Of a stretch of DNA of 64,000 nt, positions 6,044 to 57,289 are shown in pieces (the first letter of the stretch is position 1; each line of letters starts with the position of its first letter). The notes under the pieces are model-generated. The model made no database searches, was not told the DNA's origin, and saw nothing but the letters and a program-made list of their open reading frames with translations. Source of the stretch: Octopus sinensis. Lineage: Eukaryota. The stretch is from assembly GCF_006345805.1 (NCBI RefSeq), contig NC_043004.1:85870001-85934000 (forward strand), read 5' to 3'. Position numbers and translations under genes: made by a program.

Positions 6044-6358
6044 ATTTACATTATTTACATTTGACGGATATTTGTCCTCATCTTGTTTGTTGTTAACACA
6101 ACGTTTCGGCTGATATATCCTCCAGCCTTAATCAGGTGTCTTGGGGAAATTTGGAACCTGGGATTTTATTCCTAAGATATTTTTCGATATTATTATTATT
6201 ATTAGTATTATTATCATTATTATTATTATTATTATTATAATTATTATTATTATTCCTGGAAAAGAATTCGGAATATTGGGGTTAGTAGCCCGCGCTCTTA
6301 ACCACTATGCCATATGTAAATAATGTACATCATGTACATAATTCCTCATCTCTTAAAT
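6044..6358 (-). mobile_element. Family F: tRNA-headed SINE carrying a hammerhead motif, with 11-bp TSD
   Basis: TSD ATACCACAGAT at 6033-6043 and 6359-6369; A-box TGGCATAGTGG (6312-6302, minus), internal (AAT)n, hammerhead at 6140-6095. Confidence 0.8.
6095..6140 (-). ncRNA. Minimal type I hammerhead ribozyme motif, family F (this copy G8->T)
   Basis: GACAC-CTGATTA-A-GGCTG-gaggatatat-CAGCC-GAA-ACGT-T-GTGTT. Confidence 0.75.
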
Positions 6359-6745
6359 ATACCACAGATTTGCTTTGTCAGTTGTTTGACCTAAACCAGT
6401 TGAGAGTGTCCTTTGGTGGCTGACAATTTGTGCATCTCTGATTAGGAGCAGAAGTAGTGGAGGAGAATCACAGCCATATGTTGAGAGTGATTCTTTGGGG
6501 TTTGAATAATTCACCTCTGGAAACATGGGTGTCTCGTTCAACATCCCTGAAGAACCCTTATTGAAGGACCATTTGAGCGGGATGGGCTACCCGACCTGAA
6601 GATATGAGATCACGATGTCGCGCACATATTGTTGTGATGCATGAACCTTGTGTACCCTTATCGGACTGGTAGTCACGATGGGTATATTGGGCTTCGTATA
6701 TTTTATCCCAGTGTCACTTAGATGGCATGCACATTTCTCTCACTC
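6359..6745 (+). mobile_element. Family M copy (starts ~6024, interrupted by family F)
   Basis: Aligns with 22450-22874; ends CACTCAATAATAAC. Confidence 0.85.
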
Positions 6746-7075
6746 AATAATAACAATAATAGTAATAAAACGGATGGTCAAGAACGGAACACGTTTCACT
6801 ATAGGTCTATACTTTGAAGAGGTATACGACTTTTGTAAAGAATAGGATCAACTAAGAATTGGTATTTATATACTGTTTGGAAGATTCACTTTCGATTCCC
6901 TGACAAACTCATTTTATTTCTTTGGCGCTCTTATCACTTTTCTCCTATTTTTTAGTATATTTCTGCAGGAATATACAGACTTGGAAAATAATGAAGAGTT
7001 TAATAAAATAACTTTGAAATTTACAAGCTGGTGTCTGGAAGAATCTACCAAAGAATTTCGATAGGATGTTTTAAT

Positions 7076-7270
7076 TTACGGAGATGTACTTCCATAGCAT
7101 GTGACCTGATCTGAGATCGTGTGTTTGAACGAAAATAATTGCAGCGCGAGAGGTGTTTATAAGCCATTTAAAAACACAGAAAAACTTTTATATTCACTTC
7201 AACATCTAAATTTAATTTGCCAAAATACTTTCGTCGCTTTGAGACGGCGACCTGTTCACAGACAGAATTT
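7076..7270 (-). mobile_element. Family D copy with G3-C8 hammerhead motif (7216-7266)
   Basis: Matches 18941-19135; minus strand GTGAACA-G-GTCGC-cgtctcaaa-GCGAC-GAA-AGTATT-T-TGGCAAA. Confidence 0.8.
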
Positions 7271-8169
7271 TGTTTAATTTAGTTCACTTTAAAACTGGAA
7301 GTTGGTATCATGAAACCAAGGTCCAGTTTCGGGTGATTTTTGTATTAAAAAGATCAAGGAAGGCAGGAATTGTTCATTTTCAAAATTTGGCCCCTATACT
7401 TAAGAGAAACATTTCGGTTTACAAATTGTTTTTAAGAGACTGCTAACATTTTTGCAAAAGATTCTCCGTAAATATAACAAGAAATTAGTTTTAGATTCGG
7501 TAGGAAATAAACTCTACGAACTTTCCAAACGCTTCCATCTTAAAATGCGAGACTTCGTGTCTGCGTAAGAAATATTTACGGAACACTCAAATTATTCGAC
7601 TTATTTTCACTTAGTAAATGGAGATGCGATTTTCGGATGTAACCACTTCCATAAGAAAAGACCCGGCGCTGAATCCTTGTCCTTTTAATACTACTCGTCG
7701 GTGTCGTTGTTCTTTCATCATAGATGAGACAAGCATATGATCAAAGACGCTCCAACCATGATTATAAAGCATTGTCATATTAACACTGAACATAACTGTC
7801 ATTATTGTTTAACCGACGGTCATCTTTAATGAAACAGATATATAAGGAAGGATGTTCCAGCTTTGACTATCCTACATTGTATTAACTGCCTATTGCTGGC
7901 GTTGCGTTTGTTGTTTAACCCAAGTAAGAGATGAGCCTTAATGTAACAGGCATTCAATAAAGGTCGTTGAAGCTTTGAACATCATATATTTTTCTATATA
8001 AGGGACAAGACTCTCATTGTGTCCTTTATTGCAGATGTGCGAAACATTCCTTGACTATAAATGTTTATGTTCCAATTAAAAAAAAAATAGCCAAGTACTG
8101 AGTTAAAACTTTAATCAATTATTTATTTCCTATTTGCAATTTCTGTTCTAATACTTAAACTAGAAACAT

Positions 8170-9000
8170 TATTACGTTAGCAGTGGATTTGCAGAATTAC
8201 TTTTGAAAACATTACATCGCAATAATTTCTGTGATCAAATCCCACCAGGTCAGATCTGCATTTCATCCTTTCCGAGTCCATAACATAAAGTGCCAATGAA
8301 ATACTTGGGTTGAGCGTATCATATCACCTCTTCCCACGTAATTGCTGATCTATATCAGAAACTATTATTACTGGCAGAAACGTTAGCACGCCGGGCGAAA
8401 TGCGTATTTCGTCTGCCGTTACGTTGTGAGTTCAAATTCCGCCGAGGTCGACTTTGCCTTTCATCCTTTCTGGTTCGATTAAACAAATACCAGTTATGCG
8501 CTGGGGTCGATGTAATCGAATTAATTCTATCCCCCAAATTTGAGGCCATGTGCTTCCAATAGAAAGGATTATTTAAGGCGGCGAGCTAGCAGACTGGTTA
8601 TCAGACGGGTTAAATGCTTAGGAGTATTTTGCCCGTTGCTACGTTCTGAGTTCAAATTCCGCCGAGGTCGACTTTGCGTTTCATCCTTTCGGGGTCGATA
8701 AATTAAGTATCAGTTGAACACTGGGGTCGATGTAATCGACACATTCCCTCCTCCAAAATGGCTGCCCTTGTGGCAAAATTTGAAACCCTCATTATTTATA
8801 TAGAGGTGATCTTACGAAATGATTAGTTTTGGATTTTCATGTTTCGAGTTCAAATCTCGCCATGGTAAACTATACTTTCCATATTTCCATGTTTGATTAC
8901 ATAACGTCTAGTTATGAACTTCCTGGTGTTCAGATCGCTCTGGAATCAACTTGGGGTCAACTTTGCTTTTCATCTTTTCGGGGTAGATAAAACAAAGATT
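8170..9000 (+). mobile_element. Array of four or more family A/B SINEs
   Basis: Clear copies at ~8370-8570 and ~8575-8795, plus diverged or partial ones. Confidence 0.85.
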
Positions 9001-54924: not shown

Positions 54925-55260
54925 ATAATCACCACAACTACCACCACCACCACCACCATCACTGCCCCAACCACCACTACTACCACCACTACAAGCACCG
55001 CCAACTCATCTCCGACCACAACTACCACGAGCACTCCTACTACTCTCACCACCATCACAACCCCTGTCAACACCTCCCTGACCACCACCACCATCACAAC
55101 CACCCTACCTCCACCACCACAACTACCACCACCACAACCACCACAAACGCCACCACCACAACCTCCACTATCGCAAGCCACACTACCAACACAACCACCT
55201 CTGTTACCTCCACCACGAACATCATCATCATCATCATCATCATCATCATCATTATTCTCA
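54925..55260. repeat. (ACC)n-rich then (CAT)n low-complexity tract
   Basis: Degenerate CCA/ACC triplets. Confidence 0.85.
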
Positions 55261-55854
55261 TCAATTATCCTCTTCAGTTTCAACAAGACCGCGTTATCTC
55301 AGTCTTGTTATACATGTCCATTGACATTTCCATTGTAAAATTTTTATCTTTGAAATACACAAAGAAACTTTAAACTTTGAGTTTTCAAGGAACTTTTTAT
55401 AATGTAAACATTATTGATATCCCATAACGTATATATTTTCTTTAAATGCTGGCTTTCTCGGAACGAAACACGCCGGCCGTAAAGAGTGAGCTGCTTCGAT
55501 TTCAAAATTTAATTGTATTTTAATTGTGCAGCGCTTTTTTCCCCACCAGGAGATAGATTTTACACTATTTGTATATACTTGAGACGACCAACTTGGATGC
55601 GTTTTCAGGGTGGCTCGAACACACCGTAACAATGAGCTGCAAAAACAACGAAATATCTATATCTAATGTTCCCGTTAACCTATGGGAGTATTTATTTCGC
55701 ATGGCTTTTGAGATATACAGTGTCTCGTTTTGTTTTGTTTTCTCAACGCACTACGTATTAAAGGGACATTCCTCGTGCGACATACCGCAGTCAAAAAGCA
55801 TTGACATAAAACACATGCATTAAGTATGTGACATCAATCATGATTAATTGTATG

Positions 55855-56285
55855 CGCAGGAGTGGCTGGGTGGTAGGTACCTTGCTTGCCAACCACATGG
55901 TTCCGGGTTCAGTCCCTCTGCGTGGCACTTTGAGCAAGTGTCTTTTACTATAGCCTCGGGCCGACCAACGCCTTGTGAGTGGATTTAGTAGTCGGAAAGT
56001 AAAAGAAGCCCGTCGTATATATGTATATGTATATATATATATATGTGTGTGAGTGTGTGTGTGTCTGTGTTTGTGTGTCTGTGTTTGTACTCCCAACATC
56101 GCTTGACAACCGATGCTGGTGTGTTTACGTCTCCGTAACTTTGCGGTTCGGCAAAAGAGACCGATAGGATAAGTACTAGGCTTACAAAGAATAAGTCTTG
56201 GGGTCGATTTGCTCAACTAAAGGCGGTGCTCCAGCATGGCCGCAGTCAAATGACTGAAACTGGTAAAAGAGTATAAGAGTATGTG
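55855..56285 (+). mobile_element. SINE family C, full length
   Basis: GCAGGAGTGGCTGGGTGG A-box region, GGTTCAGTCCC B-box, internal TA/GT tract, tail AAAAGAGTATAAGAGT. Confidence 0.92.
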
Positions 56286-57244
56286 AATAAAAACGCCAAC
56301 AAATATTACTTTGCGTTTAGAAATAACTGAAGAGATAAATAATTCATAAAATAAAATAAAATGGAAATAAAAATTAACTTCAGGCTATGAACTCCGCTCA
56401 CACTGCTAAAGAATAACTTGAGCAACAAATGTCTTCTAACCAAAATTCCGCTAAAACTAAGCTTTGCGACAACAAAGTAGATACATAGAATGGGTGTTAA
56501 GGGTCCATTTAATGTGCTTGCTCTTTGGGTGTAGTCTAAAACTTTTGCAAGGTCTGTCATGGTCATCCGACAAATAGAGGTTGTTGTGAGATGACCACTG
56601 TGAGGCAAGCATTCTAAAGAGATTTCCGTGTTTGATGGTAAATCTTTGGTCGTAGATTGCTGCGTCAGTTTTCCACTCTAGACGTAATGAACAAACCAAA
56701 GGCGTTGGACTTCCGTAGATGTGTTCGGTGCTCCAGTATGGTCACAGCTTTAGGGCTGAAATGTATAAAAGAATACGTATATCCATGTATGTATTAAAAT
56801 ATATTATATCACGCTCTGACTCTGATCCTCATTCTCTCTCTCTCTCCCTCTCTCTCGCCATCTTTCTCAAATTTCCCTGTGTATATATATATATATATAT
56901 ATATGTGTGTGTGTTATGTATGCTTATAAGCAAATACACACAAATACACACACTAGCAGATATAATGGCATGCATACAGAGATAGAGAGAAAAGGCAGAG
57001 AAAGAGAGAGACACAAGATAACCATACATACACACATACATATACACTTACATACATACAAACTTACATACATACAAACTTACATACATATATACATACA
57101 GACACGCTTGCATATATACATACATATATACATATATACATACTTGCACGCATACATACAGACATAAATACAAATATACATATATATATATATATGAAAA
57201 AACAAGACAAGATAGAAAATGCTAAAATAATTTTATAAAGAACA

Positions 57245-57289
57245 TTTCAGTACCGGTTTCGCTCATTTTGAGACCTTTTCAACTGTAAA
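57245..57289 (-). ncRNA. Minimal hammerhead motif, U3-A8 variant, GUA triplet (family I)
   Basis: TTTACAG-TTGAAAA-G-GTCTC-AAAAT-GAGC-GAA-ACCGGT-A-CTGAAA; tail runs into (TA)n at ~57195. Confidence 0.68.

Follow-up and report, generated by a model that had tools for sequence, protein, structure and literature searches.

Does one short stretch of octopus DNA hold the remains of several unrelated retroelements, each of which carried a self-cleaving hammerhead ribozyme of its own? The question is raised by a 64,000-nt stretch of the Octopus sinensis genome (contig NC_043004.1, positions 85,870,001–85,934,000 of the forward strand; hereafter the window), for which an earlier reading made from the letters alone, here called the original prediction, had described about 14 copies of a minimal hammerhead motif in six or more repeat families. 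The window is AT-rich (GC 30–41%) and carries dense microsatellites and interspersed repeats, and its motif groups are labelled D, F, E, I (with left arm I'), G, X44 and H. We found a genuine hammerhead-type motif in at least four, probably five, sequence-unrelated elements. The window is best explained as microsatellite-rich octopus DNA in which several different retroelements of the Penelope-like kind, carrying minimal type I hammerheads, would have left either their 3'-terminal remains or short non-autonomous derivatives, a reading to which we give a probability of roughly 0.68.

The hammerhead motif and its excess over chance

The motif was searched for with a base descriptor made up of N3-UGA-N-N8-A with a Watson-Crick 3-8 pair, no or one bulged nucleotide, helices I and II of 4 bp each, GAA, a palindromic helix III and H17, and departures from it were counted as defects. 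A strict descriptor added a purine bulge and the G10.1-C11.1 pair, both published features of minimal hammerheads, and a third one, kept separate from the palindrome-only descriptor, permitted a hairpin in helix III. Dinucleotide shuffles, the reversed sequence and decoy descriptors run on the real sequence, in which UGA at positions 4–6 was swapped for each of the other 63 triplets, served as controls. With at most one defect, the base descriptor gave four matches in the window compared with 0.00 in 60 shuffles and none in the reversed sequence; the decoy triplets gave a mean of 0.37 and a maximum of 2 at this setting, and UGA ranks first of 64. With at most two defects there were seven matches (three D, two F, H and I) compared with 0.80 per shuffle, and the reversed sequence again gave none. 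Under the strict descriptor with at most two defects, seven matches in four unrelated families (D, F, H and I) stood against 0.0175 per shuffle, with any match in only 6 of 400 shuffles and none in the reversed sequence. A search of this kind, allowing any Watson-Crick 3-8 pair and a 1-nt insertion and set against shuffled controls, is what the original prediction had proposed, and it showed the motif in excess of chance.

Moreover, the purine bulge and G10.1-C11.1 were found in all seven matches, though the base descriptor did not impose them. When positions 3 and 8 were freed, two extra matches appeared, both of which are non-Watson-Crick at 3-8 and without the bulge and G10.1-C11.1. The descriptor with a hairpin helix III gave two matches, D and G only, compared with 0.02 per shuffle, and a junction scan with the core left unconstrained gave 11 matches, only three of which, all D copies, had a hammerhead-like core. 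Judged on the base motif alone, H and I are marginal, because the decoy triplets give a mean of 2.75 matches on the real sequence at up to two defects without the extra features. Neither E nor X44 passed any test of motif statistics, and E is not supported as a hammerhead.

The architecture itself can be read directly from the window. Thirteen motif spans were located (two F, four D, two E, two I, and one each of G, X44 and H), at the places where the original prediction had put its 14 or so and with the same outer coordinates, 6095 and 57289; it had also quoted the cores, extra purine and palindromic helix III sequences (ACGT, AATATT, AATT and ACCGGT) correctly. Copies occur on both strands and share no orientation. 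The layout runs through helix I, the 7-nt core, helix II, GAA, helix III with A15.1 and U16.1, H17 and the return strand of helix I, and it is found whole in one D copy (21127–21176), except for a swap at positions 3 and 8, and in G. Both F copies have it with one core substitution each, H and I have it with U3-A8 and weak helices, and E (U6, one A missing) and X44 (no A15.1) fail it.

The D copy at 21127–21176, on the plus strand, is the only one free of defects, with helix I TTTGTCA/TGACAAA, core GTGAACA (G3-C8), a bulged G, helix II GTCGC(8)GCGAC, GAA, helix III AATATT and U17. Two further D copies form the arms of a head-to-head palindrome at 19002–19280 and share a change of U4 to C: the right arm (19149–19198, plus strand) has the core GCGAACA, and the left arm (19083–19131, minus strand) also lacks one A of GAAA. 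The fourth and divergent D copy (7216–7266, minus strand) keeps the core, bulge, helix II and GAA intact, while its helix III reads AGTATT and its helix I has decayed and is mismatched at 1.1-2.1. Both F copies lie on the minus strand. The one at 6095–6140 has helix I GACAC/GTGTT, core CTGATTA (G8 to U), a bulged A, helix II GGCTG(10)CAGCC, GAA, helix III ACGT and U17; the one at 29889–29934 has the core CTCATGA (G5 to C) and one mismatch in helix I. G (44226–44281, plus strand) combines helix I GGAAGCTTC/GAAGCTCC and the canonical core CTGATGA with a weak 3-bp helix II (TTC/GAA) flanked by U residues, GAA, a hairpin helix III ACAG(8)CTGT and A17, so that its helix III is a 4-bp hairpin with an 8-nt loop where D, F, H and I have palindromes.

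H is a single copy (57244–57289, minus strand) with core TTGAAAA (U3-A8), a bulged G, helix II G(T)CTC/GAGC, GAA, helix III ACCGGT, A17 and an imperfect helix I. The I motif (40634–40670, plus strand) has the same core and U3-A8 pair, a bulged A, helix II GTT(9)AAC, GAA, helix III AATT, U17 and a helix I just 3 bp long, and it is the right arm of a head-to-head pair; in the left arm, I' (40583–40612, minus strand), a deletion has collapsed helix II and helix III has lost its palindrome. X44, also a single copy (44642–44686, minus strand), has core TTGACAA, no bulge, helix II TCTTT/AAAGA, two extra nucleotides, GAA and helix III CCGG without A15.1. In E (19337–19373, plus strand) the core CTGTCGA (A6 to U), a bulged A and helix II GAGC/GCTC are followed by GA ACGT A with one A missing, and its mirror copy (19687–19723, minus strand) lies in the other arm of a tail-to-tail palindrome at 19283–19777. 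A further CTGATGA at 9647 was rejected as a motif, with a helix II of only 2 bp and 4 of 7 pairs in helix I.

Across these groups G10.1-C11.1 is present in D, F, E, H and I (in E as read directly from the sequence), and the nucleotide between A9 and 10.1 is G in D and H and A in F, I and E. In G the bulge is a U and the closing pair U-A or U.U; X44 has a U-A closing pair and no bulge. The 3-8 pair is G-C in all four D copies, C-G in G and in F at 29889, U-A in H, I and X44, and a broken C.U in F at 6095. Covariation at 3-8 had been proposed, and no supported family departs from Watson-Crick pairing there: D has G-C, F and G have C-G, and H and I have U-A. As a phenomenon such covariation had already been published, in the form of U3-A8.

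Element families, palindromes and (TA)n tracts

Only D and F are interspersed repeats in the window, so that six or more repeat families was an overstatement; E and I are arms of local palindromes, G lies within a palindrome, and H and X44 are single. D is a 232-bp element with copies at 21115–21346, 18915–19143 and 7076–7264. In the first of these the motif lies near the 5' end and the 3' end adjoins (TA)n; the second is a full-length element with (TA)n at its end, and the D copy with the motif at 7216 is 82–83% identical to the other D copies. A short D form, found at 19137–19280 and 40313–40398, terminates in GCAATTGT, and TATATA then follows at 19280. At 40155–40398 two 5'-truncated D copies stand head to head (palindrome 40243–40392), both without the hammerhead part. 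F is a 120-bp element whose two copies, at 6043–6162 and 29837–29956, are 95.8% identical. A search for further copies of the families in O. sinensis and O. vulgaris loci reached through transposon proteins, and in one further locus, gave no D, H, I or G and a single degraded relative of F. An open reading frame (ORF) derived from D had no homologues in the protein collection, and the window's own ORF is not itself recorded. A metagenome search for the D core joined to helix II found one match, in GC-rich bacterial coding sequence, which we judged to be chance. MAFFT alignment of D with F put the families out of register, even with padded sequences.

The inverted pairs and the (TA)n tracts beside the motifs are likewise observed directly. 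Head-to-head inverted pairs are formed by D (19002–19280), truncated D (40243–40392), I (about 40531–40722) and G (44169–44292), and in the two D pairs, I and G the junction lies within about 12 nt of helix I. The E arms make up a 496-bp tail-to-tail palindrome (19283–19777, 98.8%) with (TA)n at its centre. In both H and I a (TA)n tract of at least six units begins 55 nt past the predicted cut site, and in X44 one begins at 42 nt; a (TA)n starting 35–75 nt downstream is found at 7% of window positions as background and at none of 25 decoy-descriptor sites. The distance is 132–153 nt in the long D form, E and I'. The 3' ends of D, H, I, X44 and E adjoin (TA)n, and most elements or pairs have TA-rich repeats on both sides. 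F is the exception, with a homology block that ends about 56 nt past the cut site and no (TA)n.

The G palindrome (44169–44292, 124 bp; 96.7% over the 120 bp at 44171–44290) has TATATA on both sides, and its right arm is the motif. Its arms differ at just two positions, both of them critical to a hammerhead: U4 and A17 in the plus arm, and A4 and G17 in the minus arm, where the mirror core is CAGATGA. That the differences fall on critical positions may be chance (rough estimate about 0.05). Another long near-perfect palindrome lies at 40960–41320 (365 bp, 92%), and this one, together with those at 19283–19777 and 44171–44290, is a candidate for an inverted insertion, a foldback element or miniature inverted-repeat transposable element (MITE), or an assembly artefact. 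The tails of H and X44 (minus strand, 57196–57210 and 44603–44615) both end in TTTTTTC directly before (TA)n, and GCATTTTC occurs in each; the likeness may reflect a common 3' terminus in related elements or mere coincidence in AT-rich sequence. An alignment of H, I and X44 was AT-rich and unconvincing as homology, and the three were treated as unrelated. A 47-nt tandem repeat (44685–44780, 2.1 copies, 86% matches) lies immediately upstream of X44 on the minus strand, and its unit overlaps the 5' strand of helix I.

A Penelope-like origin and its rivals

Minimal hammerheads are found in the pseudo-long terminal repeats (pLTRs) of all Penelope-like elements (PLEs) and occur massively across metazoan genomes, with many consensus families per genome and mostly solitary copies, attributed to truncated PLEs, as well as pairs on opposite strands (Cervera & de la Pena 2014, PMC4209133). 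In the same study the nucleotide between 9 and 10.1 and the G10.1-C11.1 pair emerged independently of the descriptor, the 15.2-16.2 positions were palindromic, the ribozymes acted as dimers with low activity in vitro, and U3-A8 replaced C3-G8 in about 1,300 matches in Schistosoma (PMC4209133); dimer cleavage is also the subject of work by Lunse, Weinberg & Breaker, as cited in PMC6765202. The window motifs share with this class the type I form, the short helix I, the nucleotide after A9, G10.1-C11.1, the tiny palindromic helix III, the unrelated families within one genome, the solitary copies, the opposite-strand pairs and, in H and I, U3-A8. They differ from it in that no PLE frame or pLTR pair is linked to them, in the G3-C8 pair of D and in the octopus host. 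PLEs are further known for tandem and inverted insertions with inverted 5'-truncated copies, for microsatellite targets, notably (TA)n, and for hammerheads near their 3' ends (Craig et al. 2021, PMC8557442), and reverse transcription begins a few tens of nucleotides downstream of the PLE hammerhead (Frangieh et al. 2024, PMC11167929). Inverted structures with 5'-truncated copies, (TA)n targets and a hammerhead a few tens of nucleotides upstream of the 3' end or tail are shared by the window. Naiad, the PLE clade best documented for (TA)n targeting, is without canonical hammerheads and has left only old remnants in cephalopods (PMC8557442).

From this likeness we infer a PLE origin, dimer cleavage and whatever activity may be present today. 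Several different retroelements of the Penelope-like kind would have inserted into (TA)n tracts, each carrying the minimal type I hammerhead of its own lineage. By analogy with the published elements, the transcript of a source element would have been cut after H17 once two copies had paired through helix III. Each lineage would have had its own version of one tertiary pair at 3-8 (C-G for F and G, U-A for H and I, G-C for D), and the genomic copies are now mostly dead. The original prediction had likewise called the elements PLE-related; what supports it is the published architecture, the 3' ends adjoining (TA)n and the inverted pairs, while the PLE frame, pLTR or tandem arrangement that would tie them to a PLE was not found. 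The window motifs are best placed in the published PLE minimal-hammerhead class; the possible novelty lies in D, as a natural G3-C8 family in octopus.

A number of observations weigh against a Penelope-like origin. A Pfam scan of 10 candidate ORFs, which is short of an exhaustive six-frame search, gave no PLE reverse transcriptase or GIY-YIG frame and only a weak DDE_3 match, and the window has neither a direct pLTR pair flanking an internal region nor a partial tandem arrangement of hammerhead units. The D motif is placed at the 5' end of its 232-bp unit and not near the 3' end, the G palindrome with its TA flanks could be a MITE, and the relative of F elsewhere in O. sinensis (L001:19636–19726, 86% identical) is without the core and the 5' strand of helix I. 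Defects in the core or a helix affect 12 of the 13 copies, which leaves a single intact one, and the number of good copies had been overstated, as most carry inactivating changes; the F consensus CTGATGA had been assembled by choosing, wherever its only two copies (CTGATTA and CTCATGA) disagree, the base that suits a hammerhead. Other DNA scanned, 41 kb of octopus (O. sinensis and O. vulgaris loci) and a 21-kb locus, gave matches at background level only, and hence the motif density in the window may be local.

Two hammerheads that share helix III form crossing pairs when written linearly, which puts them beyond energy models confined to nested structures, and homodimer cofolding gave only trivial domain-swapped duplexes. 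For single copies, the minimum-energy fold consists of helices I and II with an open core only in D at 21127 (z −3.24) and F at 6095 (z −2.23). The remaining copies have z of about −1.4 to +0.3 and do not adopt the hammerhead fold (D at 7216, 0.0; H, +0.25; X44, +0.26; G, −0.58, with a minimum-energy fold other than a hammerhead), and H, I, X44, E and G are without thermodynamic support (z about 0). In D the predicted minimum-energy fold pairs G3 with U17 and lengthens helix I, a pairing that may compete with G3-C8. Rfam at the gathering score gave no family, and hence no hammerhead, in the whole window, and at E up to 10 it gave nothing around D or F, the intact D copy included; its sole hint was Hammerhead_3 at G (12.5 bits, E 4.6, sub-threshold). 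The permissive run over the whole window was swamped by microsatellite-driven 'miRNA' (microRNA) matches, and the long palindromes also attract many spurious Rfam matches to miRNA precursors. An Rfam miss is expected for minimal forms without a helix III hairpin, and weighs little.

The motif-bearing units could instead be retrozymes lacking long terminal repeats, that is, short units which are transcribed, cut themselves, circularise and are recopied as tandem arrays, and not the truncated tails of PLEs. Such metazoan retrozymes, AT-rich and equipped with type I hammerheads, are found alongside PLEs in molluscs, with genomic repeats of 150–450 bp and RNAs of about 170–400 nt (Cervera & de la Pena 2020, PMC7229834), and the argument that they derive from PLE pLTRs (Li et al. 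2026 preprint) makes the two readings overlap. The window resembles them in holding short non-coding units that are AT-rich, contain a type I hammerhead and were probably moved by PLEs; the units are small (D 232 bp, F 120 bp), and the copies of D and of F have common, defined 5' ends where variable truncation points would mark truncated tails. However, retrozymes are defined by tandem arrays and circular RNAs, whereas in the window none of D, F, G, H and I is arrayed in direct tandem, the copies being solitary or inverted; the sole tandem repeat nearby is the 47-nt one next to X44. In addition, retrozyme hammerheads are usually canonical with loop–loop contacts, whereas the motifs here are of the minimal PLE type, and the 120 bp of F falls under the reported sizes of both repeats and RNAs. 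We consider this explanation unlikely for the window.

Could the motifs be mere look-alikes, picked out from AT-rich hairpin, palindrome or MITE-foldback DNA that happens to mimic a loosely defined three-way junction? For E and X44, which failed every test, and for H, I and G, which do not fold as hammerheads, this has some appeal; the decoy mean of 2.75 shows how readily the bare layout arises, the TA-flanked palindrome of G is MITE-like, other large palindromes are present, and Rfam gave no usable hammerhead match. It leaves D and F unexplained, with four matches against 0.00 at one defect, and four unrelated families where 0.0175 matches per shuffle are expected with the published features; it is also at odds with the unconstrained-core scan, in which the hammerhead core was confined to three D copies among 11 matches, and with the (TA)n spacing of H, I and X44, which is absent at decoy sites. 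We hold coincidence as a full account to be improbable. Least probable of all, and to our mind very hard to sustain, is that the motifs are currently functional host elements, such as ribozymes processing a local transcript, in place of transposon debris. One D copy is indeed intact and folds well, and the functional positions are kept between divergent D copies. Against this stand the defects at invariant positions or helices in 12 of the 13 copies, the two F copies differing at G5 and G8, the occurrence on both strands without common orientation, and the surroundings, where no long non-repetitive frame lies close by and the long ORFs are mostly microsatellite translations and transposon fragments.

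Under the Penelope-like reading, the D family deserves separate treatment. In vitro, each single mutant of a PLE hammerhead loses cleavage, and the C3G/G8C double mutant recovers part of it (PMC11167929; the swap had been made earlier by Martick & Scott 2006). Whereas that is a laboratory construct, the D core has the same G3...C8 swap in nature, in all four D copies including one that is 17–18% divergent, and its activity is putative. D might therefore be a naturally fixed G3-C8 hammerhead, in which both partners of the tertiary pair were swapped by compensatory transversions and a predicted dimer-dependent ribozyme was retained, but we regard this as doubtful. Searches of the literature found no report of a natural G3-C8 hammerhead family and no paper on octopus hammerhead motifs, which are weak negatives given partial coverage. 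If it is true, then with the C-G and U-A lineages in the same 64 kb, PLE-type minimal hammerheads would explore three of the four Watson-Crick options at 3-8 in one genome. If confirmed, the motifs would extend the catalogue of minimal hammerheads to cephalopods and give a natural case of a swap so far made in the laboratory, which would inform how freely the hammerhead core varies. Searches for canonical CUGANGA and Rfam models overlook such motifs. No new kind of biology would follow: the 2014 work had already set out PLE minimal hammerheads, their dimer logic and covariation at 3-8, and most of the copies in the window have decayed.

Comparison of the D copies at 21127 and 7216 bears on whether the motif has been under constraint. 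Among the functional positions (core, bulge, helix II stems, GAA, helix III and H17) 27 of 28 are identical, compared with 127 of 164 elsewhere (Fisher one-sided p 0.011); the single functional change gives a G.U pair, and identity in loop II is 3 of 8. Helix II is invariant across the D copies and loop II variable, among few copies. The changes in helix I of the 7216 copy break pairs, and none is compensatory. As far as one comparison goes, the pattern in D is what constraint on the source lineage would leave. In F the invariant G5 and G8 are the very sites at which the two copies disagree, and on this evidence F appears to have been under no constraint after insertion. The claim of selection on cleavage, which had been drawn from compensatory change at 3-8, went too far: it rests on one divergent D pair and on comparison across families, not on compensation within a family.

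Other repeats in the window

A SINE-like repeat (short interspersed nuclear element) of about 205–235 bp is abundant, with copies that are 73–91% identical and stand partly in head-to-tail clusters. The reference copy lies at 11229–11461, and others at 4091–4214, 8371–8740, 9861–10033, 11127–11700, 13555–13798, 30003–30830, 34425–34657, 35105–35337 and 61594–61794; relatives are present in the O. sinensis and O. vulgaris loci. It seems akin to the tRNA-derived octopus SINEs, but ARAGORN found no tRNA in the window, the repeat included. A remnant of a Tc1/mariner-type DNA transposon lies at 39320–40005, with broken ORFs and a weak DDE_3 match (E 9e-4, under the Pfam cut-off). Copies of a transposon-derived ORF at 59857–60264 (minus strand), 17649–18285 and 61806–62445 have no Pfam domain and have homologues across invertebrates, the named ones being in Octopus sinensis (74% identical) and Penaeus chinensis (64%). 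For the transposon ORFs of the window, O. vulgaris and O. sinensis supply the best relatives that carry a name. A fragment at 60521–61307 resembles a long interspersed nuclear element (LINE); it has no Pfam match and looks like the C-terminal part of a LINE reverse transcriptase. Its part at 60660–61307 shares 94% DNA identity with O. vulgaris chromosome OX597823.1 (L003:9925–10569).

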